DNA of 64,000 nucleotides from Laetmonice hystrix (taxonomy: Eukaryota), in the NCBI GenBank assembly GCA_965235115.1, contig OZ249447.1, positions 9,424,001 through 9,488,000 on the forward strand. Reading direction: 5' to 3'. Both the position numbers and the translations under genes were made by a program. Shown here in pieces: positions 26,953 through 55,438 of this stretch. The notes under the pieces were generated by a model that saw nothing but the letters and a program-made list of their open reading frames with translations, searched no databases and had not been told where the DNA came from. Each line of letters starts with the position of its first letter. Position 1 is the stretch's first letter.

Positions 26953-27844
26953 AATAATTGGTAAGCTCAAGATTTTGAACATCCCCCATTCAGAATCAGA
27001 GATGGAAATTCGCAGCATAGACACTATAGAACTGGCAAATGATATATGAGTGGGGGAGGGGGAGAATCCAGTTGAATTTTAGGTAATGATCAATCAACAA
27101 AGTTCAGTCAACATCAGCAGGCCTAAACAATTAGAAGTCAAGAAAAAAAATGTATATAGATACAGATCTAAGAAGGCCAAAAAGGACATCTCGGTGAATA
27201 AAATGAATAAAATTAGAAGTGGATTGGAAAAAAGTCTTCAATGTTTTATGCTGCCTAAAATGTTAGTACATTTTCCCACATTTTTTCAGAGAAAGGTGCA
27301 CCCCAAAAAAATGGGATTCATGCAGGAAAGGCATTACAATATTTGTCAAAAAGGAGGAGGATACATTTTATGTCCCCCCCCCCATACAGCCAAAAACCTG
27401 GACTGTGGGTGTACATTGAAGGGAATGGGAGCAATGCCCCGAATGAAAATATTGATTAGTTTGCTGACTGCATGATCAATGTGCACCTAGCTGACATCAG
27501 TCGTACTGGTTCTAATCTATATGGTTTATGATATCATGCTTAATCTCCCCCCATATATAGCTCCATTAAATAAGAAAAGCTGACAACCCATGTCTGCATT
27601 TTGGAGTCATTGAAATGAGAGATATTCGCTGATCGTTTTAAACATTTTCTTAGGGGAGACCTCCACCCCCCAAGAGAGGGGGAGTAAGACTATCCCCTCT
27701 TGTATAGGCCTACTCTCCCGCTGTGCCTTCTGAATGACGCAGGTTCGCCTTCGGCGCTGCATATGGGACTTCGCCGGTGTCAGATCCTCAAGGAGAACAC
27801 TGCACCCATAACCTTAATTGGCGGGAGGTGGGGTTGCGTAAGGG

Positions 27845-28074
27845 TATATATAGGGCCTCTACATTGTGGTCTTTACACTTGTGCGTTTGTAGCAGTCAGT
27901 GCCACTCGAGATAAGACTCGACCAGAAATATTTCTTTTATATATAGACTAGAGCTATGCCCTAATAGGCATATTTCTATTTGTCATATTTCATGGATCGT
28001 GCTGCCTTAGCCAGGACATCGTCTTCGCTGATTGTTAGTGAAAAGTCACTGTACCAAAACAAGTCCCAAGGAAG
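27845..28074 (+). promoter_or_regulatory. Putative TATA box and non-coding first exon of SLC43 copy 1
   Basis: TATATATA at 27845-27852 preceded by a GGCGGGAGG GC-box-like motif; donor AAG|GTAGGC at 28075; the ATG at 28427 directly follows an acceptor (TTACAG), implying an upstream UTR exon. Present in copies 2 and 3 (TATA 38530 and ~48550). Confidence 0.45.
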
Positions 28075-28426
28075 GTAGGCGTCAGGGCATGTACTTGCAC
28101 AGCCCTTTGAATTCTTAAACAGTAGGCAAATATCGGCATGGATATGCAGTTGTTTGTGAATACAGTATAGCCTCTATGTAATTTGTATCCCACTGCCTTT
28201 CTTTAATTTGCAAGAAAGGTCCATCAATGAACCAATTGCCTTATCTTTACCATAGGTGAATATTTTAGGCGCTAATTCATGAATATTGTGCGTCATTTTT
28301 GGCTCGTCTGTGCAAACATGCTCGTTGCGAAAGATATAGGCTTAGGTTGGCGTTAGTTGATTTTCTAAACGGAACGCGCAATTTAAAAAAATATTTAAAT
28401 AAATGTTTATGGTGCTGCCGTTACAG

Positions 28427-31400
28427 ATGGGTTACACTGCATCCCCAATAAGAACAGCCTTATCACTGTTCGTCGCATTCTGGGAATCATTTCTTTTCGG
28501 TGGAACCTGTGCTGGCTGGAATGTTTTCGTCTATGTCCTCAAGCAAGATGGTGTTTATTCCCTGCTTTGCACAAACACTCTCAATGCCAACAACTCCGGT
28601 GATTACGAAAAAAACTTTGAAACTCCAAGTCAACACTTGAACTCCACGACGGATCATTCGTTGACTGATTGCCCTGCACAGGATAGTAACTTTAGTCTGG
28701 CATACACAATTACTATATCCTTATTAGGAGTGCAGGCTTTCCCCATCGGTGCCGTATTTGACCGACTCGGGTTACGAGTCACAAGAACAGCATCCATGTG
28801 CGTATAATATTAGGCCTACGTGGTCATGTTTTCCTTATTTTGTCTGGGATTCAGAAATATCAAGAAAATCGAAAAATAGACATGCATCCTAAGTCTGTGC
28901 GTGTGTAGGCCTGTAGAGATCATTGTTCGTGATAAGTGTGGGCACACAGAAATATGAATCTCAGCATTTCAATCTAGGGTGATTGCTGGTTCCGTTGTAG
29001 GCCTATAGAGTTACTTTGAAGAGTGTAGGCCTGCCTACTTGTAAACTTGGCTGCTTAAATAGGCCGTATACAGTCTCCATCTTTATATACAGCATGGTTG
29101 CAATATTAAACTGCGAATTTGAATTTCAGACTTACTTTGATCGCCGCCTTTTTGATGTTGGCATTTGTTGACCCGTGTAAGTAGTCTAGACGTCTACAGA
29201 TCAGGAGCGTATCCCACATTTTCGGTTAGGGAGAGGGCAGGTTCAATCTAGGATATAACTAAGTTAGGGGAAACCGTGTTACATTTATGAACCCAAGCCA
29301 AGGCTGCCTCGTTCAATCCTATCTATACAGGAAGTGGCGTTTAATTTCCCATGCATTCCACACCAGATATGTTGAGGGGAGGGGCTTCTTTGACTACAGC
29401 CCCGAAGAAAGTATACTTAAAAGACCCCCAACACGCTTCCAAGGACCAGGGAAGAAGTCGTTCATCAAGATAAATCGTGATCACCTGTGGAGAATAACTT
29501 TTTAATACGTTGTAGACCTATACATTTTACACAGATTCCTCTTGGTTGATTTATCCGGGATTGGTCCTACTTGGTGTTGGCAACATAGCCATCAATGTCA
29601 CAAGTAATCATGTAAGTAACTATATATAGCCAATGTATATCACTGACATCCAAACTGTAAGACAAACCAAAAACACTATGTCTCGCCACGATATGACCTG
29701 CGTCCGTGATTGTGTCTTGAGTCTGTAGGCTATATTGCATAGATGGCTATACGTCCTTTAACATGTAGGATAAATAAAAACTGTATTCAGATTGCAGGAC
29801 TTGCAGGAAAGAAGGCCGGAACAGCCATTGCAATCTTTTCCGGTGGATTTTCAGCTTCGGGGGTTGTTTTTCTATTTGTAAAGGTAGGCCCTGGGTCAAT
29901 GACATCGGGGCCCATTCCTCTGAACCCAGTGTTTGCATTTTATGTCCCTAAATATAACTAAGCCAAACTAAGCCATTGATAGGCCTAACTATAGGTTTTA
30001 TTACGATGGACTTTTTCTCGTACATTAGTCGTTTTGTCTGCAAGCATTGTCATCTCTCACTGTGTTTTTCAGCTGGCCTCAGACGCTGGGTTTCCTCGAC
30101 GATATAGTATTCTGATTTTTGTCGGTCTACTCGTGGCCTCCTTTATTTTTACCTTCGTCCTTTTTCCAAGTTATAAAGTCCCTGAGTATATAAGCTTGAA
30201 TCGGCCGACCTGGGAGAAATCAGCCAAACGGGAAACAGGCGCTGGAGAGGGAGGTGGAGATGATATCCCTCACAGTGATGAAGTGTCTGAAAAGACGCCA
30301 CTGGTAGATTCTGCAGATCAAAGGTCAGCTGAAGCCGACCATCAGGCAAACGGAAATGTACAACCAGAAAGTTTCCTCCACCACGTGTGGTCGATACGCT
30401 TTGTGCTTCATGTATATTGGTTCTCATTTTCAAATTTGCGCGTCCAATACTACGTGGGAAGCTTCAATGCGTGGGTAACGGACATCAGTGACAACAACGA
30501 AAGTCTTGGTAAATCAAATTTAACTTTTGTTTGGCCCTCCAAAAATGTATTGGTATGCCTTCCGGGACCAAAGCAGCGCCCTCTATATCAGAAAATTCCA
30601 GCCCCCTCCCGTACACAAGCATCCCTCTCCAATACAAAGGCCTGGCTATACGGGCCCGCTTTTGATTCAGGCCTTATAGGCCTGCTTATAAATTATGCCT
30701 GTTGATGGGCGTAAATATGTTTCCTGTGATCTTGTGAAAAGGCCGTCCTAGAAACACACGAACGTATGATAAGATCTCGTTTAATTGTGCCTCTCAATAA
30801 CGCCTTCTCCTTAAAGTTAGTGCCCTCAGCAATGCGTTCGGTTATATGGTTCTTTCTACGCTTGTGTTGTCGCCAACGGTTGGAATTATCATCGACAGTC
30901 ACCGTCGGCGTATCGAAGGTAGGATATGTAGGCTCCAGATGTACGTGTATACATGGTTTACCATACCAGGACCTGGATTAGCACATGCCAGAATTGTTGC
31001 CAAGAGTTCGAATCTTATGAATTATATTATTTGAATTTTTATGTTTTTCTAGTCATGTTGAAAACATTGCACCTTAAGTTCCGTCTGATAATATTGTAGA
31101 ACTAATGAAGAAAGGATTTTGTATATTATAACCCGGCTCACACAAAACATTGTAAAACGTTATTCATCGTTGCTATAGCTGGGAAATAATATCAATAATC
31201 AAGACTTGTCATAAAGCATTGAATTAATAGAAATCAATCAATTTTATCTTTTTCAGATTCCGCTCCATATGAAAAAAGGGCAAAGGCCTCATTCGTTCCG
31301 GTTACGTTGGCCTGTGTACTTGGAATATTGATGAGTGCGTTTGTCTTGGTTGAGACCATGTGGTCGGCTTATGTGTCCATTGCTGTGGTACAAATATACA

Positions 31401-34176
31401 GATCGTTCGTCTATCCGGCCTGCTTTATCTACTTGTATATATCGTAAGTGACCAGTGTGATACGTTAGAGCTAAAACAGTGTATCTTGCCGTATCTTAGA
31501 AATCTATTCTCCTCCGTCACTAAATCGATAAAATTAGAAAGAAAATAATCTCAGAGTGACTCATCACATATGAAACTGATGAAGAATTTACGAACAGGGC
31601 CAAATGAAAATGGCAATGCCTCAAGAACCCAATATAAGGGTGGGGGCATTGCTAAGATTCTTTTAGCAGGTCAGTTGTAAATGATCGCGTATAACTTTTC
31701 TTCTCATTATGCAGCTATCCTTTGAGTCATTATGGAAAACTGTTTGGGCTTTCCTACTTCATTGGCGGAATTACAAACTTCCTGCAGTACGCTTTTTTCT
31801 CATGGGCAGAGGAGGTGAACTCGTTTTCCCCGGTAGGTGATCCATCATTGATATTGACGGAGATTCTTCTCTATAGACCTTCTATTATCTTTTTTTCATA
31901 CATTTTCCTTACTTCGATCCTGATGGGCTCATTTTGTGATGTGGACCCCTAAGCACTACATGGAGGCCTTACAGGCATGGGCATAGCTCTGTCGCCGAAC
32001 ACATCAAAACATGTCTTGATAATTAATGTGGTCATTATTTTATAGGCTACTTACAGAGTTGTAGGACCGATATAGGACCAGTGATTGAAAAATCAGTTTT
32101 TGTAATGATGATTCAACTTGTTGGGGTGACTAACATCACCAAGGACCAAAAAAAGTCACACGTAGGCTATAAGGCCTCGGGCAACACGGTCGAAATCCAA
32201 CAACGCCTATACTACTTTACAAAGTTAGGATGCTTCTTTTCACATAGGCCTAGGCCTAATCGTTATTGTGAATGTGTTATATGTTTAAAGCAGGAATCGA
32301 AGCAATAAGGCTCATCAGAGCCCCCTGCTAGATGACAGAGCTCAATGCAGACTTTCACTGCTCTCCCGCTAGGGGCGAAGGGAGCCCCCTGGCGGAGTGA
32401 GCCGAGTAACAGTCTAAATGTGAGCTGGTTCCCGGTTCCGTCGCTAGGTGGCTCTGTGGTCGACGCGAGCAGATCTCACTCGCGTTGACCACAGAGCCGT
32501 CTAGCCAGGGAGCCGGGAACCAGCTTAAACACCCTGTCGTGGTTTTATAGTTTAAAGTGAAAACGCCAGACGGCAGCTAGCTATCACGACTGTCAAAGCA
32601 TCGCCGCACGTGGCGCGTCCAAAAAAATTAAGCATAGATCTAATAAAAGCATTTCAGGAAGGGAGGGAGGCCTATATATAGGCCTACCCTAAGCTGATAT
32701 TATGCTCATCAAATTAACTTCGAGTGTAACTGAATCTCTAAATGGTCCGCGAACGTAGAACGTCAGTGTTGTTTGCGCCATGCTTATTCAGGTTTCTCAA
32801 AAATCCACCAGTCGGCGCTGCCAGGGTCGACCAGGGGAAGCCAGCATGCAGAGGCCTCTAAGGTGTTGAGATTTGGCCCTAACTTCACAAATAGGCTGTT
32901 CTATTAAGCCCGCCGTACACTTTCCCGATTTTGCCCAACTCGAGTCGGTAACCATGGTTCCCGACTGCTCCCGACAGCTCCCGACTGCAGTTGGAGCAAA
33001 TCGTAGCCGATTCGAAAAACGAATCGGGAGCCGAGCGTGGTTCCCGATTACGGCCGACTAAGCTTAGCTTTTCCAACCTTGGGTTCTTCAAAACACGCTC
33101 GCGGTGGTAATAACAATGAATCAATTCAGATGGAAATTATTGCAAAGGAAACTAGAGATATGTGGCTTTTGTCCAGTATAAAATTTAATAAATAGATTTA
33201 AGGATTCTTTTTCATACGGCCATTCGAAAATCATCAAAAACGTATAAAATAACTGAAAACGTGTGACTTCTCTACCTTGCAGGTCTTGCCATGCAAAATC
33301 TGTCGCGACGACCTATACAAAAAAGTACCCAGAATTTGTCCCCACATCGTAAGGTTTCCATAGATGTCTTTCTTTTAGCGAGACTCCTTTTAGTTATGAA
33401 TACAGCGAGCTTTGTTTGGAAATTTAAAAGTTCCCAAAACTTTGATAATGACGTTAAATATCACAATAGACAGCCAGGCTCCAATCGAAGCTGTGTAGGA
33501 TCAGGGGCCTATAATGATGTTTACACAGGTATTATAATGCTATAATTTTCAGAGAATATCTACTGACCTTTGAAGTTTCTGTGTCTGTAGTATTTTAATG
33601 CATCTGTTGATAAAACGAGAGCTAGACAGCAAAATAGTACAGTCAACGTTAGATCTAAGCCTTCTCTTCACGGCTCTGCCGCACGTCCTCATTATGACGC
33701 CACAGCCTTTTTGTCAGTGAAATATTGTAATATTATGTATCAAAATACGTAGTTAACTAATTATGATGTCACAAGTGACAATGAAAGCTAAACAGGTCGA
33801 TCAGTTAGTCTTCACACTATTATCACCTAGGCTAGAAAGATTATAATAACACTTTCTGGGCGTTCAAGTGGGGGTTGAACTGGATGACCTCCCAACTACG
33901 GTGCCGATCTATGGCCGCCCACACTGCATCAGTGCATGGGTCGGGGGCAAATAATCGGGAGAGTGTACGGTGGTCAGTCGGTAGTCGGGAGTCGGGAGTT
34001 GGGCAAAGTCGTGACAGTGTACGGCGGGCTTTAGGCTGCTTATACCCTACCTTTGTTGATTTCAGGGAAACATCCTATTGCTGTGTCTGACGGTCCTGAC
34101 ATTTGCTCATCCTATTTACATCTACACTCAAAGTCGGAGATCTTGCGAAAAGTCAGACGCGGTACCAACCGGATAA
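28427..34176 (+). CDS. SLC43A3-like: SLC43 family (SLC43A3/ENBT1-like) MFS transporter, copy 1, 9 coding exons, ~513 aa
   Basis: Exons 28427-28797, 29130-29176, 29535-29611, 29791-29883, 30073-30508, 30817-30918, 31257-31443, 31715-31832, 34066-34176; GT-AG with consistent phases. Family motifs ESFLFGGTCAGW..FVYVLKQDGVY..LC, FPIGAVFDRLG, SHYGKLFGL, LTFAHP. Exact subfamily and substrate uncertain. Confidence 0.88.
32423..32525. repeat. ~100 bp foldback palindrome in SLC43 intron 8 (also ~43678-43779 and 53302-53404)
   Basis: 45 bp arms 32425-32469 and 32479-32523 around loop CAGATCTCA; 39 Watson-Crick pairs. Confidence 0.85.
32907..34030. mobile_element. PIF/Harbinger-type non-autonomous element (1124 bp), copy 1 only
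   Basis: TTA|AGCCCGCCGTACACT ... AGTGTACGGCGGGCT|TTA; copies 2 and 3 show the empty site GTTCTATTAGGCTGC (~44143, ~53780), confirming the TTA TSD. Confidence 0.92.
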
Positions 34177-35524
34177 CAACTAATACCAAAAGATACTGCG
34201 TGATATTTTACTAGTCTATTCGTACGCGATATAATAGGCTAGACTCTGAGGCACATAGATTACGTAACGCTATTCTGACCATAATCTGACACCCCACCCC
34301 CGTAACGCTTTCAATGGAGCTTTATAATGGACTGTACAAGTGTAATGTTTGGACATCCCCCCCTCTACCCAGCATACCCTGACTGAGCGTTATTTACGTA
34401 ATTTATGGAGGCCCCTATGGACTAACCACTCACGCCTGTCTTAAAGGCAGTTGGCGTACTGAGTGTTTCGGCAGCATTAACCCTGATCCGAGGGTTAGTC
34501 CCTATATAATTGGTACATCGCCCGTGATAACTTAACCCCCGGGAAATTGGGTCGAAAATATAAATAAAGATCCATATAGCCCTAGCCCTTATCCCTAGTG
34601 GCCCGGGCCCTATACACCTCCCCAAACACATGCATATTCTATATCCCTATCCCTGACCTTAACCCGAACCCCTGCCCAAAAAGTTTGGGGAATAACCATT
34701 GGGGGAATAACCCCAACTCACGGGCGTTAGGCCTACCTGTCTGCGTAGACCTCCCAGCTAGCATAAGCTGGTTCCAGACCCTCTCGATAGAGGTCGCTGG
34801 CGCTTATCCGCTATCAACCTATGTCATAGCCGGAAACCTCCGGGGAAATGTCTTACTAACGAAGATCCTCAGCAAAATCTCCCCCCCCCCCCCAAAGTCC
34901 CCAGATCGGGGATATTCCAGTTGTGATGTTTCTGAAACAGAAATAAAACTCTCCATTGAAACAGTATTTGAGAGGTATCCTCAATATGGGATCGACGCCT
35001 CTGAGTGATATCAATCAAGCTCCAGCAGCGCCCCCTATCAGAATAGCCCAGTGCGGCAAAAACAAAAACGATTGCAAATTCGATCATGTTATTTTCTGAT
35101 GTTAAAATTTGAAGAGCTACCCGCGATTAGGCCTACTTCTGATTATACGATAAGCTTACCGACATGGACATTGAACATAATTGGAATTAGGCCTGCGTGC
35201 CTTTTACTTTTCCTCAGTAACCCGGATATGCCTATACTATAGGCTATATAGATCTAGGGGCCTATAATAGCTTAATAGGCCTAGGCCTTATGAAATAGGC
35301 CTTTATATAATGGTAGGCTATCTTGTAAAGATCACGATGAATCTTAAATAAAGAATATGCTGTGTCCGCCTGATGTCGAAAATCTTTCAATTTTTTTTAG
35401 AATGCCTTTTACTTTTTAAGTTTTATCTAATTTAGGTAGGCCTAATTAAGGTCCTATAGGGCCTATAGGCATGTCTAAGATCTGGGCCTAGATCGCCTAT
35501 AATCCTGCATCTCAAATTCAAGGA

Positions 35525-36940
35525 TCTCAAACTCAAGGACTAAAAGATTTAAAAGCATGTAGTCCATCAGCTGAGTCTCCAGTCATTGTTCTTGTGTCAA
35601 AGATGTTGCCAATTTCAAAGTCTCTTTTGCCTGGCAATAGACGAAGAATATGATCTCCAGAGGAACTGGCAGTACGACATGAAGCTGCACGGGCTAGGAA
35701 TGCGGAAAAGATGTCAGGCAGGAGTTTGACTTCAAACAGTGGTGAAACTGAGCTAAAACCATTCAAAGCTGCAGAAGATATGAAATCCACAGAAAAACCA
35801 GCAAACAGCTCTGATGAGACTTTTGTAGCATTTGCACGTGTGTTCAGTGGTACAGTTCGAAAGGGTCAGAAACTGTATATATTGGGATCTAAACATGACC
35901 CAGCCAAGGCACTTAAGTTGATTGCTGAAAGTGTGGACCCTGGCAGCCCAAAGACAGTTCAACAACTGAGCGACTACAACCACATGACTGTGGCTACTAT
36001 TGGCAGTGTTTTGCTCTTCATGGGTCGAGAGCTTGAAATGCTTGAGGAGATACCAGCTGGAAATATAGTTGGACTTGGAGGCTTGAAAGAGCATGTCCTC
36101 AAATCTGTAACTTTATCCAGCACAGTAGCTTGCCCGTCATTCACAGGCATGCGCCTTGAAGAGTAGCTATAGAGCCAAAGAAAGCAGAGAACATGAGTGC
36201 AATAATAACAGGCATGCGACTGCTGAACCAGAGTGACCCAAGCGTTGAGGTGTTGGTACAGGAAAATGGCCAACATGTTATCATTGCCACTGGAGAAGTA
36301 CATCTACAAAAGTGTATTGATGATCTACAGAATCAGTTTGCCAAAGTGGAAATAAAGCAGTCATCACCGATTGTGTCATTCCGTGAAACAATCATACTGC
36401 CTGAGAAGACAGCCAAAGTGAATAAATTCAATTCAACCACAGTAACAATGAAGGGCGAGCTACAAGAGGATGATGGGAGAGAAAATATTAAAGCGAAAGA
36501 TCAGGGCACCATCAGCCTCACCACACCAAATCAAGCATGCAGCATTAGTGTCCTTGCCTTGCCATTATCAGAAACGGTTGTGAGTCTATTGGAGGAGAAC
36601 AAGGACATGATTAAATCTCTTGTCCAACATACCTCTGCACTTGTGGCAGGAAACAATGAACTTCAGCAAGATCACCTGAATGAGGAGACTGTTGCAGAAA
36701 TCCTTGAGTTACGACATAAGCTCGAGAAGGCATCAGTTCTGCAGGTCCCCAGTGGGAAGGAGCTGTAGAGTAGATATATGGGCTTTTGGCCCTCGAGGAA
36801 AAGGGCCAAATCTATTGTTAAACCAGATCAAAGGCTATGAAGGGCCAAACATGTGGGATTGTCTTGAAGAAAACAAAAATGAGAAAAGTCTTAATTTGAG
36901 AGATTTTGACAGTAGCGTTGTGAGTGGCTTTCCAATGGCC
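35525..36940 (+). pseudogene. EFL1: EFL1 internal fragment (parent 24682-26112), disabled
   Basis: High identity to the parent but no 5' end, a 16 bp deletion (CAACTCCAATTGTAAG) at ~36161, a further 1 bp deletion near 36733, and truncation at ATGGCC. Confidence 0.93.
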
Positions 36941-37966
36941 TGCTAGTCAAGCAGTTTGAAGTTAGTATCTCGTTCACGGTATGCTCTTCACGATTCGCGA
37001 ACGCAGGATCTGATTCGCCACCTAGGATACGATTCGCAATTACGGCAGGGGGACTAATGAATGGTACCCACAGACTCCCCTCCTCTTGGGCTACCGCTGC
37101 CTAGGAGGAAAATGATTGGCAATTATTTTAAAGGGTCATGGTGGGCTAATGAAGTTGGTTCAAGTTCGGCGATTTCATAGTATAAGGCGTCCACCCGAAG
37201 TGTCTCTGACAGTCCCCTACGGCACAGGGGGACTAATGAAGGGTACCCACAGACTCCCCTCCTCCTGGGCTATCGCTGCCTATCGTTACCCTTGTACTAA
37301 AGATGTATGAATAAAATTATAAGTGCATTGAGAAAAAAAATCTTCAATTTTTTACACTGCCTAATATATTAGTATATTTTCTACACTTTTCAGAAAAAAA
37401 GTGCACCCAAAAAAAGGGAATTCCTACAGGGAAAGCATCAAAATATTTTTCAGAAACGAGTATACGCATTTGATGTCCCTCCTTACATTGGTACATACAG
37501 GTCGTGATACAGGTCTATGCAGGCCTATAAAGCATACGGCCAAAAACCTGGACTGTGGCTGTACACTGAAGGAGACGGGAGCAATACCCTGAATGAAAAT
37601 GTTGATGTTTGCTGACTGCGTTATCAATGTGCACCGAGCTGACATCAGTCGTACTGGTTCTATTTGGTTTATGATATCTGCCAACTTAATCATGCTTAAT
37701 CTCCTGCCCCCCCCCCCCCACCATATAGATCGATTGAATAAGTAACCTGACAGCCCATGTCTGCATTTTTGGAGTCATTGAAATGAAAGATACTCGCTGA
37801 TTGTTTTACGGCCACTCCCGAAGAGGGGGGGGGGTAGGCCTGTCCCCTCTCGTATAGGCCTACTCTCCCGTCTATCCCGCACGACGCAGATTCGCCTTTG
37901 GCAAACTATTGCTGCATGTGGGACTCCACCGGTGTCACATCCTCAAGGAGAACACTGCACCGATAA

Positions 37967-38491
37967 GGCCAAATAAAAAAAGTTACTTGTTTAGCGTCCG
38001 CCTCGTCAAATTTTTCCGGGTCGAGGGGGAGGTTTTTATTTTTATTTTTTACTCTATGGATGGAGTGGCGGCGTGGCTGTAGGAAAAAGACACCCATGGT
38101 ATTCATGGTCAGACGGCAAGTTAGGAAGGTACAGAAGACTATGAAAACTTCCAAGCTAGAATTTGAAGAAGTAAACATGAAACTTCTATACATTAAGTCT
38201 TTGTTCAAGCGAAAGTTAAACTTGTGCACATGTATTTTAAAATGAAATTTTGTCACTAGTCATCATACAACACAGTTCGAAGTGACACTGCTGGGACTCT
38301 TTTTGAACCAACTTTACTATCGTTAATGGGTTTACAAAGCACATTATACACTGTTCTTAGGCGGGAACACGTTGTTTTGACAGTTTTTACACTTTATTTT
38401 TTTTTTTAATAAAATAAAAAGAAATCCACAGGTCGGGGCATTTCACAGGTCGAGTGGGGACGCTAAACAAGTAATGTTTTTTTATTTGGCC
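37967..38491. mobile_element. MITE with GG..CC termini and TAA TSD (Zator- or Harbinger-like), 525 bp
   Basis: TAA|GGCCAAATAAAAAAAGTTACTTGTTTAGCGTCC ... GGACGCTAAACAAGTAATGTTTTTTTATTTGGCC|TAA; empty site CCATAACC in copy 1 (~27808). Confidence 0.85.
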
Positions 38492-39103
38492 TAACCTTAA
38501 TCGGCGGGAGGTGGGTTTATGTAAGGGCATATATATAGGGCCCCTACATTGTGGTCTTTACACTTGTGCGTTTGTAAGCAATCAGCGCCACTCGAGATAA
38601 GACTCGACCGAAAATATTTCCTTAGACTAGAGCTATGCCCTAACAGGCATATTTCTATTTGTCACATGTCATGGATCGTGCTGCCTTAGCCTTAGCCATC
38701 GTCTTCGCTGATTGTGAGTGAAAATTCACTGTACCAAAACAAGTCCCAAGGAAGGTAAGCGTCAGGGCATGTACTTGCACAGCCCTTTGAATTTAAACAG
38801 TAGGCAAATATCGGCATGCATATGCATAGTTGTTTGTGAATACAGTATAGTTCTATGCAATTTGTATCTCACTGTCTTTCTTAATTTGCAAGAAAGGTCC
38901 ATCGATGAACCAATTGCCTTATCTTTACCATAGGTGAATATTTTAGGCGCTAATTCAAAAATTTGTGCGTCATTTTTGGCTCGTCTGTGCAAACATGCTC
39001 GTTGTGAAAGATATAGGCTTAGGTTGGCGTTAGTTGATTTTTTAAACGGAACGCGCAATTTAAAAAAATATTTGAATACATGTTTATGGTGCTGCCGTTC
39101 CAG

Positions 39104-42100
39104 ATGGGTTACACTGCATCCCCAATAAGAACAGCCTTATCACTGTTCGTCGCGTTCTGGGAATCATTTCTTTTCGGTGGAACATGTGCTGGCTGGAATG
39201 TTTTCGTCTATGTCCTCAAGCAAGATGGTGTTTATTCCCTGCTTTGCACAAACACTCTCAATGCCAACAACTCCGGTGATTACGAAAAAAACTTTGAAAC
39301 TCCAAGTCATCACTTGAACTCCACGACGGATTATTCGTTGACTGATTGCCCTGCACAGGATAGTAACTTTAGTCTGGCGTACACAATTACTATATCCTTA
39401 TTAGGAGTGCAGGCTTTCCCCATCGGTGCCGTATTTGACCGGCTTGGGTTACGAGTCACAAGAACAGCATCCATGTGCGTATAATATTAGGCCTACGGGG
39501 TCATGTTTTCCTTATTTTTGTCCGGGATTCAGAAATATCACGAAAATCGAAAAATAGACATGCATCCTAAGTCTGTGCGTGTGTAGGCCTGTAGAGATCA
39601 TTGTTCGTGATAAGTGTGGGCACACAGAAATATGAATCTCAACATTTCAATCTAGGGTGATTGCTGGTTCCGTTGTATAGAGTTACTTCGAAGAGTGTAA
39701 GCCTGCCTACTTGTAAAAATTGGCTGCTTAAATAGGCCGTAGGCCTTATGTACAGTCTCCGTCTTTATATACAGCATAGCTGCAATATTAAACTGCGAAT
39801 TTGAATTTCAGACTAACTTTGATCGCCGCCTTTTTGATGTTGGCATTTGTTGACCCGTGTAAGTAGTCTAGGCCTCTACAGATCACAGTGGCGTACCCAG
39901 AAACTGGACCCAGGGGGTGCTGGAAATAACCAACGTCGTATAGGCGCTGCAAATTGTGAGGGGGCTGTGGCAACAAGCGCACCAAAAAAATGGGAAAATT
40001 GAGGGGTGAGCACCCCAAGCACCCCCCCCCCCCCGGGTACGCTACTGGATCAGGAGCGTATCCCACATTTTCAGATGGGGAGAGGGCAGGTTAAGTCTAG
40101 GATGGCTGGTTCAATCCTACAGGAAGTGCAAGGCGTTTAATTTCCCATGCATTCCACACCAGATATGTTGAGGGGAGGGGTTTCCTTGACTACAGCCCTG
40201 GAGAAAGTACTTAAAAGATCCCCAACACGCATCCAAGGGCCAGGGAAGAAGTCGTTCATGCAAGATAAATCGTGATCACCTGTGGAGAATAACTTTTTAA
40301 TACTATGCTGTAGGCCTATACATTTTACACAGATTCCTCTTGGTTGATTTATCCGGGATTGGTCCTACTTGGTGTTGGCAACATAACCATCATGGTCACA
40401 AGTAATCATGTAAGTATATAGCCAATGTATATCACTGACATCCAAACCGTAAGACATACCATAGACCTACTCTATAATCTACGTCTATGGACATAACAAC
40501 AACACTATGTCTCGCCACGATATGAAATTCTGCGTCCGTGATTGTGTCTTGAGCCTGTAGGCTATATTGCATAGATGGCTATACGTCCTTTAACATGTAG
40601 GATAAATGCAAACTGTATTCAGATTGCAGGACTTGCAGGAAAGAAGGCCGGAACAGCCATTGCAATCTTTTCCGGTGGATTTTCAGCTTCGGGGGTTGTT
40701 TTTCTACTTGTAAAGGTAGGCCCTGGGTCAATGACACCGGGGCCCATTCCTCTGAACCCAGTGTTTGCATTTTATGTCCCTAAATATAACTAAGCCAAAC
40801 TAAGCCATTGATAGGCCTAACTATAGGTTTTATTACGATGGATTTTTTGTCGTACATTAGTCGTTTTGTCTGCAAGCATTGTAATCTCTCACTGTGTTTT
40901 TCAGCTGGCCTCAGACGCTGGGTTCCCTCGACGATATAGTATTCTGATTTTTGTCGGTCTACTCGTGGCCTCCTTTATTCTTACCTTCGTCCTTTTTCCA
41001 AGTTATAAAGTGCCTGAGTATATAAGCTTGAATCAGCCGACCTGGGAGAAATCGGCCAAACGGGAAACAGGCGCTGGAGAGGGAGGTGGAGATGATATCC
41101 CTCACAGTGATGAAGTATCCGAAAAGACGCCACTGGTAGATTCTGCAGATCGAAGGTCAGCTGAGGCCGACCAGCAGGCAAACGGAAATGTACAACCAGA
41201 GAGTTTTCTCCACCACGTGTCGTCGATACGCTTTGTGCTTCATGTATATTGGTTCTCATTTTCACATTTGCGCGTCCAATACTACGTGGGAAGCTTCAAT
41301 GCGTGGGTAACGGACATCAGTGACAACAACGAAAGTCTTGGTAAATCAAATTTAACTTTTGTTGGGCCCACCCAAAAATGCATTGGTATGCCTTCCAGGA
41401 CCAAAGCAGCGCCCTATACCATCGTAAAATTCCAGCTCCCTCCCGTGCACAAGCCGTCCCCTCCAATACAAAGGCCTGGCTATACGGGCCCGCTTTTCGT
41501 TTATAGGCCTAAGCTGTATAGGTCTGCATGCATATAGATTATACCTGTTGATGGGTGTAAATACATGTGATCTTGTGAAAAGGCCGTCCTAGAAACACAC
41601 GAACGAATGATAAGATCCCGTTTAATCGTGCCTCTCAATAACGCCTTCTCTTTAAAGTTAGTGCCCTCAGCAATGCGTTCGGTTATATGGTTCTTTCTAC
41701 GCTTGTGTTGTCGCCAACAGTTGGGATTATCATGGACAGTCGTCGTCGGCGTATCGAAGGTAGGATATGTAGGCTCCAGATGTACGTGTAGTGACATGGT
41801 TTACTACCTGGACCTGGATTAGCACATGCCGGAATTGCTAGAGTTCTTTTTCTAGTTATGTTGAAAACATTGCACCTTAAGTTCCGTCCTATTGTAGAAA
41901 GAATAAAGAAAGGATTTTGTATATTATAACCCGGCTCACACAAAACATTATAAAACGTTATTCATCGTTGCTATAGCTGGGAAATAATATCAATAATCAA
42001 GACTTATCATGAAGGATTGAATTAATAGAAATCAGATGCTTAAAAACGATGTTTAAAAAAGAAACAAGGAAACAAGGAAGATGACCTCAGAGAAAATCAA

Positions 42101-44294
42101 TCAATTGTATCTTTTCCAGATTCCGCTCCATATGAAAGAAGGGCAAAGGCCTCATTCGTTCCGGTAACGTTGGCCTGTGTACTTGGAATATTGATGAGTG
42201 CGTTTGTCTTGGTTGAGACCATGTGGTCGGCTTATGTGTCTATTGCTGTGGTCCAAATATACAGATCGTTCGTCTATCCGGCCTGCTTTATCTACTTGTA
42301 TATATCGTAAGTGACCAGGGTGATACGTCAGAGCTAAAACAGTGTATCTTGCCGTATCTTAGAAATCTATTCTCCTCCGTCACTAAATCGATAAAATTAG
42401 AAAGAAAATAATCCCAGAGTGACTCATCACATATGAGTCTGATGAAGAATTTACGAACAGGGCCAAATGAAAATGGCAATGCCTCAGGAACCCAATATAA
42501 GGTGGGGGCATTGCTAAGATTCTTTTAACAGCTCAGTTGTAAATGATCGCGTATAACTTTTCTTCTCATTATGCAGCTATCCTTTGAGTCATTATGGAAA
42601 ACTGTTTGGGCTTTCCTACTTCATTGGCGGAATTACAAACTTCCTGCAGTACGCTTTTTTCTCATGGGCAGAGGAGGTGAACTCGTTTTCCCCGGTAGGT
42701 GATCCATCATTGATATTGACGGAGATTCTTCTCTATAGACCTTCTACGTATTATCTTTTTTTCATACATTTTCCTTACTTCAATTCTGTGGGGCCCATTT
42801 TTTGATGTGGACCCCTTTTTGCAGGGTAGGCCTATAGAGTCTATGTAGATCTGTAGGCCTAAGCATGCAGGCATGGGCATAGCTCTGTCGCCGAACACAT
42901 CAAAACATGTCTTGATAATTAATCATTGCAGGCATGAGAGTGACGACTGAAAAAAAAATTTGAAAATTTCCGGGGCTATGGAAAATGGCGAGGCCCTTGG
43001 GATATCAAGGGGCAAAGCACCTGTAAGCTGAGCAAACAAAATCAGGTACCTTAGAGTTTTCACAAAACACAGTTTGCATCGAGACTTTTGCCAGGATGAC
43101 GCAATGTTGCAACGTTTGCTGGCAAGTTTTGATGAATTCGAACAGGTTTTACCCTAACCCCCCCCCCCCCCCCGTCATAATGCATTTTGAGATCTCAACG
43201 GATTTGCATCGATCTCGATGACCACAAATTTGGATGTAAAAAAATCGGAATTCCGAGAATAATCGGAACACTCTCATGCCTGTATTAATGTGGTCATTAT
43301 TGTATAGGCTACTTATAGAATTGTAAGACCAATATAGGACCAGTGATTGAAAAATCAGTTTTTGTAATGAGGACTAACACCAAGGGTCTACCAAAAAAAG
43401 TAGGCCTACACACGTAGGCTGAGTCCAGAGGCAACACGGTCGAAATCCAACAACGCCTACTGGCGGGAAACTTTACGAAGTTAAGATGCTTCTTTTCACA
43501 TAGGCCTAGTCCTAATCGTTATTGTGAATGTGTTATGTTTAAAGCAGGAATCGAAGCAATAAGGCTCACCAGAGCCCCCTTGCTAGATGACAGAGCTCAA
43601 TGCAGACTTTCACTGCTCTCCCGCTAGGGGCGAAGGGAGCCCCCTGGCGGAGTGAGCCGAGTAACAGTCTAAATGTGAGCTGGTTCCCGGCTCTGTCGCT
43701 AGGTGGCTCTGTGGTCGACGCGAGCAGATCTCACTCGCGTTGACCACAGGGCCGTCTAGCCAGGGAGCCGAGAACCAGTTTAAACACCCTGTCGTGGTTT
43801 TATAGTTTAAAGTGAAAACGCCAGACGGCAGCTAGCTATCACGACTGTCAAAGCATCGCCGCACGTGGCGCGTCCAAAAAAATTAAGCATAGTCTAGATC
43901 TAATAAAAGCATTTCAAGAAGGGAGGGAGGCCTACCCTAAGCTGATATTATGCTCATCAAATTAACTTCGAGTGTAACTGAATCTCTAAACGGTCCGCGA
44001 ACGTAGAACGTCAGTGTTGTTTGCGCCATGCTTATTTAGGTTTCTCAAAAATCCACCAGTCGGCGCTGCCAGGTTCGACCAGGGGAAGCCAGCATGCGGA
44101 GGCCTAGGTGTTAAGATTTGGCCCTAACTTCACAAATAGGTTGTTCTATTAGGCTGCTCATACCCTACCTTTGTTGATTTCAGGGAAACATCCTATTGCT
44201 GTGTCTGACGGTCCTGACATTTGCTCATCCTACTTACATCTACGCTCAAAGTCGGAGATCTTGCGAAAAGTCAGACGCGGCACCAACCGGATAA
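39104..44294 (+). CDS. SLC43A3-like: SLC43A3-like transporter, copy 2, apparently intact
   Basis: Exons 39104-39474, 39812-39858, 40333-40409, 40623-40715, 40905-41340, 41658-41759, 42120-42306, 42577-42694, 44184-44294. Lengths identical to copy 1, splice sites intact, no stop or frameshift seen. Confidence 0.86.
39886..40047. mobile_element. CAGTGGCGTA-type MITE with 5 bp TSD (GATCA), in copies 2 and 3 (49897-50057)
   Basis: GATCA|CAGTGGCGTACCC ... GGGTACGCTACTG|GATCA; empty site ACAGATCAGGAG in copy 1 (~29196). Confidence 0.88.
42929..43282. mobile_element. hAT-like MITE, copy 2 only
   Basis: 14 bp perfect TIR CAGGCATGAGAGTG / CACTCTCATGCCTG; absent from copies 1 and 3 (GATAATTAATGTGG). 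No clean TSD visible. Confidence 0.75.
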
Positions 44295-45722
44295 CAACTA
44301 TAAGACCAAAAGATACTGCGTGATATTTTACTAGTCTATTCGTACGCGATATAATAGGCTAGACTCTGAGGCACATAGATTACGTAACGCTATTCTGACC
44401 ATAATCTGACACCCCACCCCCGTAACGCTTTCAATGGAGCTTTATAATGGACTGTAAAAGTGTAATGTTTGGACATCCCCCCTCTACCCAGCATACCCTG
44501 ACTGAGCGTTAATTACGTAATTTATGGAGGCCCCTATGGACTAACCACTCACGCCTGTATTAAAAGCAGTTGGCAGAGGAGGTGAACTCGTTTTCCCCGG
44601 TAGGTGATCCATCATTGATATTGACGGAGATTCTTCTCTATAGACCTTCTATTATCTTTTTTTCATACATTTTCCTTACTTCAATTCTGTGGGGCCCATA
44701 TTTTGATGTGGACCCCTTTTTGCAGGGTAGGCCTATAGAGTCTATGTTGATCTGTAGGCCTAAGCATGCAGGCATGGGCATAGCTCTGTCGCCGAACACA
44801 TCACTCTACTAGTTTCGGCAGCATTAGCCCTGATCCGAGGGTTAGTCCCTATATAATTGGTACATCGCCCGTAATAACTTAACCCCCGGGAAATTGGGTC
44901 GAAAGTAAATAAAGATCCATATATAGCCCCGGTCCCTACACCTCCCCAAACACATCCATATTCTATCCCTATCACTGACCTTAACCCGAACCCCTGCCCA
45001 AAAAGTTTGTGGGGAAGTTACCACTGGGGAAATAACCCCAACTCTAGAGCTAGGCCTACCTGTGTGCGTAGACCTCCCTCGATCGGCTCCCAGGTTCCAG
45101 ACCCTCTCGATAGGGGTCACTGGCGCTTATCCGGGGGCCTGTCTTACTAACGATGATCCTCAGCAAAATCCCCACCAAAGTCCCCAGATCGGAGATATTC
45201 CAGTTGTGATGTTTATGAGACAAAAATAAAACTCTCCATTGAAACAGTATTTGAGAGATATCCTCAATATGGGATCGACGCCTCTTGATTTATTTCAGGA
45301 GTGATGTCAATCAAGCCCCAGCAGCGCCCCCTAGGGGGCCTATCAGAATGGCGTATGAGAATGAGATGCCCAGTGCGGCAAAAGCAAATTCGATCATGTT
45401 ATTTTCTGATGTTAAAATTTGAAGAGCTCCCCGAGATTAGGCCTACTTCTGATTATACGATAAGCTTACCGACATGGACATTGAACATGATTGGAATTAG
45501 GCCTGCGTGCCTTTTACTTTTCCTCAGTAACCCGGATATGCCTATACTATAGGCTATATAGATCTAGGGGCCTATAATAGCTTAATAGGCCTAGGCCCTA
45601 TCAGATAGGCCTCTATATAATAGTAGGCTATATATATCTTGTAGAGATCACGATGAATCTTAAATAAAGAATATGCTGCGTTCGCCTGATCTCGAAAATC
45701 TTTCAATATTTTTTTAGAACGT

Positions 45723-47130: not shown

Positions 47131-48002
47131 TGCTAGTCAAGCAGTGTGAAGTTAGTATCTCGTTCACGGTATGCTCTTCACGATTCGCGAACGCAGGATC
47201 TGATTCGCCACCTAGGATACGATTCGCAATTACGGCGCTGAGAGTCCCCTACGGGGCAGGGGGACTAATGAAGGGTACCCACAGACTCCCCTCCTCCTGG
47301 GCTATCGCTGCCTATCGTTACCCTTGTACCAAAGATGTATGAATAAAATTATAAGTGCATTGAGAAAAAAAATCTTCAATTTTTTACACTGCCTAATATA
47401 ATTAGTATATTTTCCACACTTTTCAGAAAAAAAGTGCACCCAAAAAAAGGGAATTCCTACAGGGAAAGCATCAAAATATTTTTCAGAAACGAGTATACGC
47501 ATTTGATGTCCCTCCTTACATTGGTACATACAGGTCGTGATACAGGTCTATGCAGGCCTATAAAGCATACGGCCAAAAACCTGGACTGTGGCTGTACACT
47601 GAAGGAGACGGGAGCAATACCCTGAATGAAAATGTTGATGTTTGCTGACTGCGTTATCAATGTGCACCGAGCTGACATCAGTCGTACTGGTTCTATTTGG
47701 TTTATGATATCTACCAACTTAATCATGCTTAATCTCCTGCCCCCCCCCCCCCCACCATATAGATCGATTGAATAAGTAACCTGACAGCCCATGTCTGCAT
47801 TTTTGGAGTCATTGAAATGAAAGATACTCGCTGATTGTTTTACGGCCACTCCCGAAGAGAGGGGGGGGGGTAGGCCTGTCCCCTCTCGTATAGGCCTACT
47901 CTCCCGTCTATCCCGCACGACGCAGATTCGCCTTTGGCAAACTATTGCTGCATGTGGGACTCCACCGGTGTCACATCCTCAAGGAGAACACTGCACAGAT
48001 AA

Positions 48003-48513
48003 GGCCAAATAAAAAAAGTTACTTGTGTAGAGTCCGTCCCGTCAAATTTTTCCGGGTCGAGGGGGGAGGTTTTTATTTTTATTTTTTACTCTAAGAATGG
48101 AGTGGCGGCGTGGCGGTAGGAAAAAGACACCCATGGTATTTATGGTCAGACGGCAAGTTAGGAAGGTACAGAAGACTATGAAAACTTCCAAGCTAGAATT
48201 TGAAGAAGTAAACATGAAACTTCTATATATTAAGTCTTTGTTCAAGCGAAAGTTAAACTTGTGCACATGTATTTTAAAATGAAATTTTGTCACTAGTCAT
48301 CATACAACACAGTTCGAAGTGACACTGCTGGGACTCTTTTAGAACCAACTTTACTATCGTTAATGGGTTTACAAAGCACATTATACACTGTTCTTAGGCG
48401 GGAAGACGTTGTTTTGACAGTTTTTACACTTTATTTTTTATTTTTTTATAAAATAAAAAGAAATCCACAGGTCGCGTGGGGACGCTAAACAAGTAATGTT
48501 TTTTTATTAGGCC
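48003..48513. mobile_element. Paralogous copy of the 37967-38491 MITE
   Basis: TAA|GGCCAAATAAAAAAAGTTACTTG ... TTTTATTAGGCC|TAA at the equivalent position in unit 3. Confidence 0.85.
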
Positions 48514-49123
48514 TAACCTTAATCGGCGGGAGGCGGGTATGTAAGGGCATATATATAGGGCCCCTACATTGTGGTCTTTACACTTGTGCGTTTGTAAGCA
48601 GTCAGCGCCACTCGAGATAAGACTCGACCGAAAATATTCCTTAGACTAGAGCTATGCCCTAACAGGCATATTTCTATTTGTCACATTTCATGGATCGTGC
48701 TGCCTTAGCCTTAGCCATCGTCTTCGCTGATTGTGAGTGAAAATTCACTGTACCAAAACAAGTCCCAAGGAAGGTAGGCGTCAGGGCATGTACTTGCACA
48801 GCCTTTTGAATTTAAACAGTAGGCAAATATCGGCATAGATATGCATAGTTGTTTGTGAATACAGTATAGTTCTATGCAATTTGTATCTCACTGTCTTTCT
48901 TAATTTGCAAGAAAGGTCCATCGATGAACCAATTGCCTTATCTTTACCATAGGTGAATATTTCAGGCGCTAATTCACGAATACTGTGCGTCATTTTTGGC
49001 TCATCTGTGCAAACATGCTCGTTGGGAAAGATATAGGCTTAGGTTGGCGTTAGTTGATTTTTTAAACGGAACGCGCAATTTTAAAAAATATTTGAATACA
49101 TGTTTATGGTGCTGCCGTTCCAG

Positions 49124-52100: not shown

Positions 52101-53930
52101 AAGATGACCTCAGAGAAAATCAATCAATTGTATCTTTTCCAGATTCCGCTCCATATGAAAGAAGGGCAAAGGCCTCATTCGTTCCGGTTACGTTGTCCTG
52201 TGTACTTGGAATATTGATGAGTGCGTTTGTCTTGGTTGAGACTATGTGGTCGGCTTATGTGTCTATTGCTGTGGTACAAATATACAGATCGTTCGTCTAT
52301 CCGGCCTGTTTTATCTACTTGTATATATCGTAAGTGACCAGTGTGATACGTTAGAGCTAAAACAGTGTATCTTGCCGTATCTTAGAAATCTATTCTCCTC
52401 CGTCACTAAATCGATAAAAATAGAAAGAAAATAATCTCAGAGTGACTCATCACATATCTGATGAAGAATTTACGAACAGGGCCAAATGAAAATGGCAATG
52501 CCTCAGGAACCCAATATAAGGGTGGGGGCATTGCTAAGATTCTTTTAGCAGGTCAGTTGTAAATGATCGCGTATAACTTTTCCTCTCATTATGCAGCTAT
52601 CCTTTGAGTCATTATGGAAAACTGTTTGGGCTTTCCTACTTCATTGGCGGAATTACAAACTTCCTGCAGTACGCTTTTTTCTCATGGGCAGAGGAGGTGA
52701 ACTCGTTTTCCCCGGTAGGTGATCCATCATTGATATTGACGGAGATTCTTCTCTATAGACCTTCTATTATCTTTTTTTCATACATTTTCCTTACTTCGAT
52801 CCTGATGGGGTCATTTTGTGATGTGGACCCCTAAGCACTACATGGAGGCCTTACAGGCATGGGCATAGCTCTGTCGCCGAACACATCAAAACATGTCTTG
52901 ATAATTAATGTGGTCATTATTTTATAGGCTACTTACAGAGTTGTAGGACCGATATAGGACCAGTGATTGAAAAATCAGTTTTTGTAATGATGATTCAACT
53001 TGTTGGGGTGACTAACATCACCAAGGACCAAAAAAGTCACACGTAGGCCTAAGTCCAGAGGCAACACGGTCGAAATCCAACAACGCCTATACTACTTTAC
53101 GAAGTTAGGATGCTTCTTTTCACATAGGCCTAGGCCTATATCGTTATTGTGAATGTGTTATGTTTAAAGCAGGAATCGAAGCAATAAGGCTCATCAGAGC
53201 CCCCTGCTAGATGACAGAGCTCAATGCAGACTTTCACTGCTCTCCCGCTAGGGGCAAAGGGAGCCCCCTGGCGGAGTGAGCCGAGTAACAGTCTAAATGT
53301 GAGCTGGTTCCCGGCTCCGTCGCTAGGTGGCTCTGTGGTCGACGCGAGCAGATCTCACTCGCGTTGACCACAGAGCCGTCTAGCCAGGGAGCCGAGAACC
53401 AGCTTAAACACCCTGTCGTGGTTTTATAGTTTAAAGTGAAAACGCCAGACGGCAGCTAGCTATCACGACTGTCAAAGCATCGCCGCACGTGGCGCGTCCA
53501 AAAAAATTAAGCATAGTCCAGATCTAATAAAACTGAGCATTTCAAGAAGGGAGGGAGGCCTACCCTAAGCTGATAGGCCCTATTATAAATGCTCATCAAA
53601 TTAACTTCGAGTGTAACTGAATCTCTAAACGGTCCGCGAACGTAGAACGTCAGTGTTGTTTGCGCCATGCTTATTCAGGTTTCTCAAAAATCCACCAGTC
53701 GGCGCTGCCAGGTTCGACCAGGGAAAGCCAGCATGCAGAGGCCTAGATTTGGCCCTAACTTCACAAATAGCCTAGGCTGTTCTATTAGGCTGCTCATACC
53801 CTACCTTTGTTGATTTCAGGGAAACATCCTATTGCTGTGTCTGACGGTCCTAACATTTGCCCATCCCATTTACATCTACACTCAAAGTCGGAGATCTTGC
53901 GAAAAGTCAGACGCGGCACCAACCGGATAA
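49124..53930 (+). CDS. SLC43A3-like: SLC43A3-like transporter, copy 3, apparently intact
   Basis: Exons 49124-49494, 49823-49869, 50349-50425, 50639-50731, 50921-51356, 51678-51779, 52143-52329, 52597-52714, 53820-53930. Lengths identical to copy 1, splice sites intact. Confidence 0.86.
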
Positions 53931-55144
53931 CAACTAAGACCAAAAGATACTGCGTGATATTTTACTAGTCTATTCGTACGCGATATAGGCTAGACTCTGA
54001 GTCACATAGATTACGTAACGCTATTCTGACCATAATCTGACACCCCACCCCCGTATCAATGGAGCTTTATAATGGACTGTAACGCTTGGACACCCCCCCC
54101 CCCTTTTCACCCGCACACCCTAACTTCATGAGCGTTACGTTATTTAGGCCTATGGACGGCCCCTATGGACTATAGGCACTCACGCTGTCCGCTTAAAAGC
54201 AGTATACTGAGTGTCTCGGCAGCATTAGCCCATTGTGGGGAAGTTACCAACTCACGGGCTAGAGCTAGGCCGCCTACCTGTGTGCGTAGACCTCCCTCGG
54301 CTCCCAGCATAAGCTGGTCCCAGACGCTCTCGATAGGGGTCGCTGGCGTTTAAATCCGCTATCAACCTATGTCCTAGCCGGAAACCTCCGGGGCCTGTCT
54401 TACTAACGAAGATCCTCAGCAAATTCCCACCAAAGTCCCCATATCGGAGATATTCCAGTTGTGAGGTTTTTGAGACAAAAATAAAACTCCCCATTGAAAC
54501 AGTATTTGAGAGATATCCTCAATATGGGATCGACGCCTGATTTTAGTGATATCAATCAAGCTCCAACAGCGCCCCCTATCAGATGCCCAGTGCGGCAAAA
54601 GCAAATTCGATCATGTTATTTTCTGATGTTAAAATTTGAAGAGCTACCCGCGATTAGGCCTACTGCTGATTATACGATAAGCTTACAGACATGGACATTG
54701 AACATGATTGGAATTAGGCCTGCGTGCCTTTTACTTTTCCTAACCCGGAGCCATACCTATATCTTTATTAATGAGAAGGCTATAATAATAGCCTAGTAGG
54801 CCTATAGCCTAACCTATAGTATAGGCCCCTAGCTATACCTGGTAGAGATCACGATGACTCTGAAATAAAGAATATAGGCCTATGCTGCGTTCGCCTGATC
54901 TCTTTTAATATTCTTTTAGAATGCCTTTTACTGTTAAAGTTTTATCTAATTTAGGTGGGCCTAATTAAGGTCCTATCTTATCTAGGCAGGGCCTAGACAT
55001 ATGTCTCAGATCTAGCATCTAGGCCTAGATCGCCTAGGCCTAATTAGCTGTATAGCCCTAGCCTGCAGTTCAAATTAGAGACGATCGAACCTGCTTGTAA
55101 AACATTTTAAAATATAAATTCAATTTTTAAAGGGCAGACGTGAT

Positions 55145-55277
55145 CAATGGCGGATTCGCGGGGGGTTCAAAATTGTCTTGGGGGGAGGACCCCCAGACCC
55201 CGCCTTTGGCGCTCGTAAGTTATGCTTTTCCCGATGCCCCCCCCCCCCCACACACACATTTTCTGGATCCGCCCCTG
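55145..55277. mobile_element. CAGGGGCGGATCC-type MITE with 5 bp TSD, upstream of MON1
   Basis: GTGAT|CAATGGCGGATTC ... GGATCCGCCCCTG|GTGAT (TIR 10/13 matched). Confidence 0.65.
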
Positions 55278-55438
55278 GTGATCTTTGGAGATCATTAAAT
55301 CGCTGAGCCGCAGTTCTTTTACTATGTTTTTCTGCCTCTAGGTACTCGGATAAGGCGTCTTGTTATTTCGCGCGTGTAGTAGGCGGTACGTCTTATACTT
55401 ATTTCTATTCGCGCACTTGACTGAATCAGCAAACAATC

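Follow-up and report, generated by a model that had tools for sequence, protein, structure and literature searches.

The DNA considered here, which we call the window, is a stretch of 64,000 nucleotides from Laetmonice hystrix (assembly GCA_965235115.1, contig OZ249447.1, positions 9,424,001 to 9,488,000 of the forward strand); coordinates are counted from its first letter. Between about 24.7 and 57 kb it holds a threefold tandem array, whose units each carry a gene for an SLC43-like transporter along with a fragment of its neighbour, the gene EFL1. Within this array the short palindrome TAGGCCTA is strongly over-represented, and the comparison of the three units reveals that this word, and several close variants of it, were gained as small insertions at TA dinucleotides. 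The added letters may be scars left behind by the excision of a DNA transposon.

The unit boundaries were drawn from self-BLAST and from a three-way MAFFT alignment, and all units lie on the forward strand. The first, U1 (24682..35524), contains the 3' part of EFL1, then a copy of the SLC43-like transporter and a downstream spacer; U2 (35525..45722) opens with an EFL1 pseudogene fragment (35525-36949), followed by its SLC43-like copy; and U3 (45723..~57400) contains an EFL1 fragment (45723-47139), an SLC43-like copy and a unique tail, in which a high-copy repeat of about 720 bp is found at 55850-57334. An open reading frame (ORF) of U1, at 28403-28807, matches LAT4/SLC43A2 (E=2e-10). U2 and U3 are 3.1% apart, and U1 is about 6.6% away from each of them. 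The tree of the units shifts along the alignment: around columns 8000-9000 there is almost no difference between U1 and U3, and past column 11000 it is U3 that diverges most. This changing tree indicates gene conversion.

EFL1 itself, the elongation factor-like GTPase 1, is an intact and intronless ORF of 1142 amino acids (23524..26952, forward strand). An intronless EFL1 is unusual among animals; the lack of introns suggests a possible retrogene. Its nearest homologue is only 59% identical, the exact product is not on record, and there is no alignable relative that could serve as an outgroup. The duplication that created the array began inside this gene, and the later units each carry a 1.4-kb pseudogene piece of it. 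At the unit junction, in 35510-35540, two near-identical 15-mers are found, TCTCAAA[T/C]TCAAGGA, which suggests an unequal exchange at microhomology. Downstream of the array, at 58.1-60.2 kb, lies a Mon1/Fuzzy-type longin gene.

Abundance and product spectrum of the motif

The window contains 44 copies of TAGGCCTA, for an expected number of 0.95, taken as the mean of dinucleotide-preserving shuffles of the window; the largest value reached by any shuffle is 4. The word ranks second among all 8-mers, after poly-C, and the hexamer GGCCTA/TAGGCC, with 138 occurrences, ranks fourth among hexamers. The array holds 40 of the 44 copies, all of them in 27.7-55.1 kb, including the eleven that a preliminary description of this DNA had listed in 27.7-35.5 kb, all of which are exact; the only four others are at positions 3991, 4173, 12458 and 21340. 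The word is absent from the EFL1 coding sequence and from its two pseudogene fragments.

Because the units are paralogous, copies in the array outnumber independent sites. Sorting the 40 array copies by alignment column gives 23 groups, which represent about 21-23 independent sites, since two of the groups stem from a 232-bp segment with two motifs that was duplicated inside U2. The 44 copies of the window thus correspond to about 25 independent sites, and the density of independent sites is about 1.8 per kb of unique unit sequence versus 0.11 per kb in the flanks. In some stretches, such as 35220-35500 and 54740-55060, nested and decayed copies make up most of the sequence: the first of these contains at least 10 nested or decayed variants in 280 bp (35220..35500), and has counterparts at 45530-45720 and 54740-55060. 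The presence of decayed copies implies that the process has been running for a long time. The observed/expected ratio of CpG is 0.6-0.8 in the array versus 0.26-0.63 in the flanks, which fits the bias of the motif to CpG-rich, unmethylated DNA that had been put forward, a bias that one locus cannot establish. Rfam and tRNA scans of the window returned zero matches; the motif thus belongs to no known structured RNA.

A census of all words of the form TA-G(n)C(m)-TA in the window shows a sharp peak at the core GGCC, with 44 copies. The minor cores are GGC and GCC, with 17 and 6 copies, or 23 for (2,1) and (1,2) combined; rarer ones are GGCCC/GGGCC (4), GGGGCC (2), GGGCCCC (2), and GGGGGCC (2, at 4124 and 45332, which are independent sites). 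In the mirror control, words of the form TA-C(n)G(m)-TA number only 6 at CCGG (2,2). One canonical product accompanied by minor variants is the pattern typical of end joining.

Two other words of the same kind are enriched, both exclusively outside the array. The word TACATGTA occurs 10 times, versus 1.4 expected, at positions 1291, 6335, 6857, 11933, 14145, 18313, 61336, 62439, 63156 and 63334; the word TACCGGTA occurs 6 times, versus 0.5 expected, at positions 1655, 8209, 8589, 10429, 12628 and 57205. Both are possibly scars of other TA-inserting families that differ in regional preference or in age, and TACATGTA fits elements with CA..TG tips. Scar types would then each have their own places of accumulation; that no TACATGTA lies in the array is weak support for this, because the unique length of the array is only about 12 kb. 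Near the left end of the window, an inverted repeat of about 270 bp with 85% identity (arms 1124-1394 and 4197-4457) encloses 2.8 kb; the TAGGCCTA copies at 3991 and 4173 sit within this structure, and the TACATGTA copy at 1291 is present in one arm only.

Gains at TA between paralogous units

Alignment of the paralogues reveals clean gains at TA: the typical one adds the six letters GGCCTA, and variants add 5, 7, 8, 9, 11 or 12 letters. The simplest example is the +6 gain at 28998..29005, found in U1 only: U2 (39675) and U3 (49686) have a plain TA, and there is no neighbouring copy from which slippage could start. In U3, GGCCTA was likewise added to a TA at 54145..54152, where U1 and U2 have an empty TA; a +8 gain at 54873..54882, made of one extra TA plus GGCCTA, was inserted at a TA with no adjoining copy; a +5 gain at 53768..53774 turned a TA into TAGCCTA, which forms a 10-bp palindrome with the adjoining TAGGCT; and a +11 gain at 53574..53588, absent from U1 and U2, consists of TAGGCCCTA plus 4 letters. 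In U2 only, AGGCCTA was gained at 43401..43408 (+7), the empty sites of U1 and U3 reading GT|CA, and a +9 gain at 45332..45342, missing from U1 and U3, produced TAGGGGGCCTA; there, the added G5 and the C5 of the flank form a palindrome (C5-TA-G5). Another +9 gain, of GGCCTTATG between two TAs at 39742..39750, is common to U2 and U3 (49753-49761) and absent from U1 (29068). Finally, a +12 gain in U1, at 32668..32686, stands beside an older AGGCCTA and brings extra TA repeats plus a second motif.

At positions 28998, 53768, 54145, 54873, 45332 and 53576, the sister units keep the empty TA, and the added letters have TA on both sides. These empty sites bear out the claim, made in the preliminary description, that the motif arises de novo as a micro-insertion at TA. 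The indels listed there are all present in the three-way alignment, with one correction of size: the gain at 53576 adds 11 letters, GGCCCTA plus 4 more, instead of 7. The flanks of the motif have no extended consensus; C is depleted directly before the TA, and a T follows the empty TA in 7 of 10 empty sites, as counted by eye. Of 23 well-flanked indels of 3-30 bp, five are of the motif type (four flagged by script, and 39742 added by eye), compared with none of the five well-flanked events classed as deletions. A different kind of insertion is seen at 50185, where U3 alone has gained the palindrome GGTACC, in a G-rich stretch and not at a TA.

Could such gains result from slippage, local duplication or gene conversion from neighbouring copies? 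At a minority of sites they could. The +12 gain at 32668 lies next to an older copy, the tandem TAGGCCTAGGCCTA at 32245 is plausibly a slippage product too, and the 232-bp segment with its two motifs is a plain case of local duplication. However, the inserted letters do not in general repeat adjacent sequence: no adjoining template exists at 28998, 54145, 54873 or 53576, and slippage is refuted as a general explanation. That it should account for the phenomenon as a whole is extremely improbable.

Further information on these gains comes from three public read runs of one sample, in which the region is present as short contigs. Contigs with zero differences reproduce the reference alleles at 53574, 53768 and 54145, and these motif alleles are therefore not an artefact of assembly. 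In another set of contigs, which cover 53320-54018, the 11 letters at 53576-53588 are missing, and three more indels, at 53532, 53984 and 54055, are in a state like that of U1 and U2. These gain-free contigs have 0-5 substitutions with respect to the reference, where U1 and U2 would show 7-15 substitutions and no fewer than 23 gap letters across this interval. With such low divergence, they must represent either a second U3 allele or an unassembled near-identical copy, rather than mis-mapped paralogues. If they are the second allele, U3 is heterozygous for the +11 gain at 53576, which then arose recently, after the separation of two haplotypes that are about 0.7% apart, and the process was active recently as well as over a long time. 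A second-allele contig also covers 54712-55837, spanning the gains at 54873 and 55035; it has 14-15 gap letters with respect to the reference.

The remaining question is one of direction. Only some of the gains are strictly polarised, because the tree varies along the unit. The best case is 45332, where U1 and U2 are sisters and the insertion is missing from both U1 and U3. For the other variable sites, parsimony applied to the alignment favours gain over loss, because a loss would have to remove exactly the added letters, and restore a single TA each time. One may still suppose that the motif is ancestral and was precisely lost, or that it is a functional site under selection, with no recurrent gains at all. 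Gene conversion lends this idea some substance, since it alters the tree and leaves several of the U1-only or U3-only states without strict polarity, and three messy positions of the alignment resemble a loss of the motif in U3. Yet it must contend with the polarised gain at 45332, with a motif at 53576 that neither U1 nor U2 nor the second allele carries, and with the implausibility of exact six-letter removals restoring a single TA at many sites; as to selection, acting on point mutations it cannot make identical 6-bp insertions. We regard this explanation as highly improbable.

Excision footprints and other possible origins

We give about an even chance to the hypothesis that TAGGCCTA and its variants were left by the excision of a Tc1/mariner-like element that targets TA and has GG..CC tips, the breaks being sealed by end joining. 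It is known that excision of Tc1/mariner elements, followed by end joining, leaves two copies of TA around a few terminal bases of the transposon (PMC3408717, PMC2874221). Under this hypothesis, a cut-and-paste transposon that duplicates TA, with tips 5'-GG...CC-3' (possibly GGCC or a G-run), would enter TA sites. Upon excision, staggered cuts would leave the 2-4 outermost letters of each tip in the donor DNA, and end joining by the host would close the break as TA-GG+CC-TA. If the overhang is the self-complementary GGCC, or GGC pairing through GC, annealing would give one dominant product, and therefore a sharp peak at +6. In the +5 forms TAGGCTA and TAGCCTA, 3-nt overhangs would have overlapped completely, as they do in the scar of Sleeping Beauty; longer forms and forms templated from the flank, both rarer, would be minor products of end joining. 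Since each scar would add two new TAs, hot zones could fill with nested scars. In this way the excision hypothesis explains why the target is TA, why the product is a palindrome with the observed spectrum of variants, and why scars are nested. What the data show is gain at TA, a TA on either side of the added letters, the range of products and a recent date; the existence of the transposon, the sequence of its tips and the stagger of its cleavage are what we infer.

The preliminary description, which had already proposed transposon footprints, pointed to the GG..CC ends at 37967-38491 as those of a TA- or TWA-targeting element. The footprint origin stands as the best available explanation; the element that was cited does not. 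It is a miniature inverted-repeat transposable element (MITE) of 525 bp (37967..38491), of the PIF/Harbinger type, whose inverted repeats of about 30 nt start with GGCC; it is an insertion of U2, with a copy in U3 at 48003-48513 and a single TAA as empty site in U1, near 27809. Its flanking duplication is thus TAA, and a 3-bp TAA duplication cannot give TA+GGCC+TA, on which ground the element was rejected as the source.

One can still ask whether GGCC-tipped PIF/Harbinger (PHIS) MITEs such as this one, or an ISL2EU-type relative, are the origin of the scars. The GGCC-tipped MITE and its U3 copy speak for it, and so does the fact that PHIS inverted repeats usually start with GG (PMC4482050). 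On the other hand, the scar words that a TWA duplication would leave around GGCC are nearly absent from the window, with 0 copies of TTAGGCCTTA and 1 of TAAGGCCTAA, and most empty sites lack a TWA. ISL2EU relatives have GG tips and duplicate AT (PMC4482050); as a source they were rejected as well, since ATGGCCAT, the word expected from an AT duplication, has 0 copies, and the +6 events cannot be phased on AT. This origin is largely refuted, and we consider it very unlikely.

The wider search was equally negative. The suggested element bounded as TA|GG..CC|TA is not in the 64-kb window: no such inverted-repeat pair, with a similarity of 12-24 nt, appeared at three stringencies, only self-pairs of the palindrome. 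Clustering the 30 nt inside all TAGGC half-sites of the window yielded no shared terminus, only paralogous pairs. The 29 runs of at least 7 G or C in the window, checked as possible G-run termini, have no consistent TA flank, the high-copy repeats at 53302-53405 and 55850-57334 have no TA|GG tips, and the window ORFs that were scanned contain no transposase domain.

A parent that has vanished by collapse is another possibility. A palindromic, fold-back MITE inserting at TA could be lost by hairpin processing, or by slippage between its arms, leaving the GG+CC at the base of its stem. Short hairpin MITEs abound in this genome, one of about 100 bp being found at 53302-53405, and a perfect palindrome is indeed what this process would yield. 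But it still needs a parent of the form TA|GG..CC|TA, which is not seen in the window; asymmetric products such as (2,1), (5,2) and (3,4) are common; and the end points of hairpin deletions should vary more than observed. We hold this scenario to be quite unlikely.

Several facts weigh against the excision hypothesis, beginning with the missing TA|GG..CC|TA pair: the TA-flanked MITEs that the window does contain, at 10514-10860 and 19140-19931, carry AAGG.. tips. The words TAGGTA and TACCTA are the products expected if one tip alone were retained, and they are not enriched, with 6 and 8 copies versus about 20 each by a hand calculation from base composition. The +7 gain at 43401 occurred at an empty site without a complete TA, and two gain events bring an extra TA. 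The gains at 45332 and 53768 (AGCC-TA-GGCT) are inverted copies of their own flank. Lastly, the extreme local clustering would need many visits to the same few hundred base pairs.

The two inverted copies suggest that some breaks were sealed by templated synthesis instead of receiving transposon tips. Extended to all sites, the idea becomes a micro-insertion process free of transposons: breaks at TA, made by a nuclease or arising at fragile TAs in open chromatin, would be filled with GG/CC by a polymerase or by templated end joining. The empty search of the window, the strong regional clustering with its saturated zones, the two events templated from their own flank, and a G(n)C(m) family graded as if both 3' ends had been tailed can all be quoted in its support. 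However, untemplated tailing predicts a broad range of lengths, not a peak at exactly 2+2, and the parallel word TACATGTA agrees with known transposon tips. We know of no enzyme that writes GG/CC at TA breaks, which also counts against it, and we think it rather unlikely. A broader proposition is that a sequence-specific process writes TAGGCCTA, and that no transposon behind it resides in the assembly. This could be break-and-fill at TA in open, unmethylated DNA; it could also be the work of germline-only, TA-bounded GG..CC elements that are cut out of the soma, which would explain why no source element is found. As a whole, we judge this proposition improbable to much the same degree.

Several other repeats were encountered in the course of the search. 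The G and C runs, which make poly-C the commonest 8-mer of the window, lie for the most part inside or at the edge of repeats. The region 55850-57334 consists of two and a bit head-to-tail copies of the repeat of about 720 bp, split by G12-G15 runs flanked by TA, with TA-G12-TA at 56601-56616 between copies; its read depth, from several hundred-fold to over 1000-fold that of single-copy DNA, identifies a very high-copy family. The fold-back MITE at 53302-53405, which has paralogues in U1 and U2, also has very high read depth, and its left edge (53302) is abutted by many different sequences. An inverted-repeat element of 1127 bp, in U1 only (32904..34030), has a TTA duplication. U2 and U3 share a 166-bp insertion (39881-40047 and 49892-50057), unclassified, with inverted repeats of the CAGTGGCGTACCC type, a C13 run inside, and an apparent 5-bp GATCA duplication. 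A 366-bp insertion found in U2 only, at 42918-43283, has inverted repeats of about 17 nt and ATTAAT at both sides.

Relation to known systems

The closest known parallel is offered by the footprints of Tc1/mariner (IS630) elements, such as Sleeping Beauty and Tc1/Tc3: in them too, a few added letters stand between two TAs (PMC2874221, PMC3408717), with one dominant product, minor end-joining variants, and a heritable scar at the donor site. They differ from the present case in that the source element and its GG..CC tips are unseen here, and in that 44 copies in 64 kb, nested in hot zones, is far above the usual abundance of footprints. PHIS transposons resemble the putative element by their GG or GGCC inverted-repeat tips, by their short AT-rich targets, and by the presence of GGCC-tipped MITEs in the window, but their duplications are TWA, AT, ANT, CWG, TNA or none, and not TA (PMC4482050), and the matching scar words are essentially absent here (0-1 copies).

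Two further comparisons are of interest. The TACATGTA words share the palindromic architecture TA-XY-Y'X'-TA and are also enriched in the window; unlike TAGGCCTA, which concentrates inside the array, they would derive from CA..TG tips, and all 10 lie outside. Alternative end joining, with polymerase theta snap-back, and the P-nucleotides left by hairpin-forming transposases (hAT, Transib/RAG) can produce inverted copies of the flank like those at 45332 and 53768, but the canonical GGCC at 28998, 54145 and 54873 is not derived from the flank. A literature search of the accessible library, extended to TACATGTA footprints, found no publication on TAGGCCTA scars or on footprints as dominant k-mers. 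An undescribed system, as had been suggested for this locus, is nevertheless not demonstrated: the gains have the anatomy of a textbook mechanism, and what is missing is the source element. Finding that element, or showing that it does not exist, would amount to choosing between an ordinary mechanism operating at an extraordinary scale and a new mutational system.

If the words are indeed footprints, they constitute an unusually dense and readable genomic record of the visits and departures of a DNA transposon. Such a record would map, as nature left it in the germline of an animal, where the element prefers to insert and how end joining resolves its excisions. Footprints would also supply small indels in quantity, about one fifth of the well-aligned indels of 3-30 bp between the paralogues being of the motif type.

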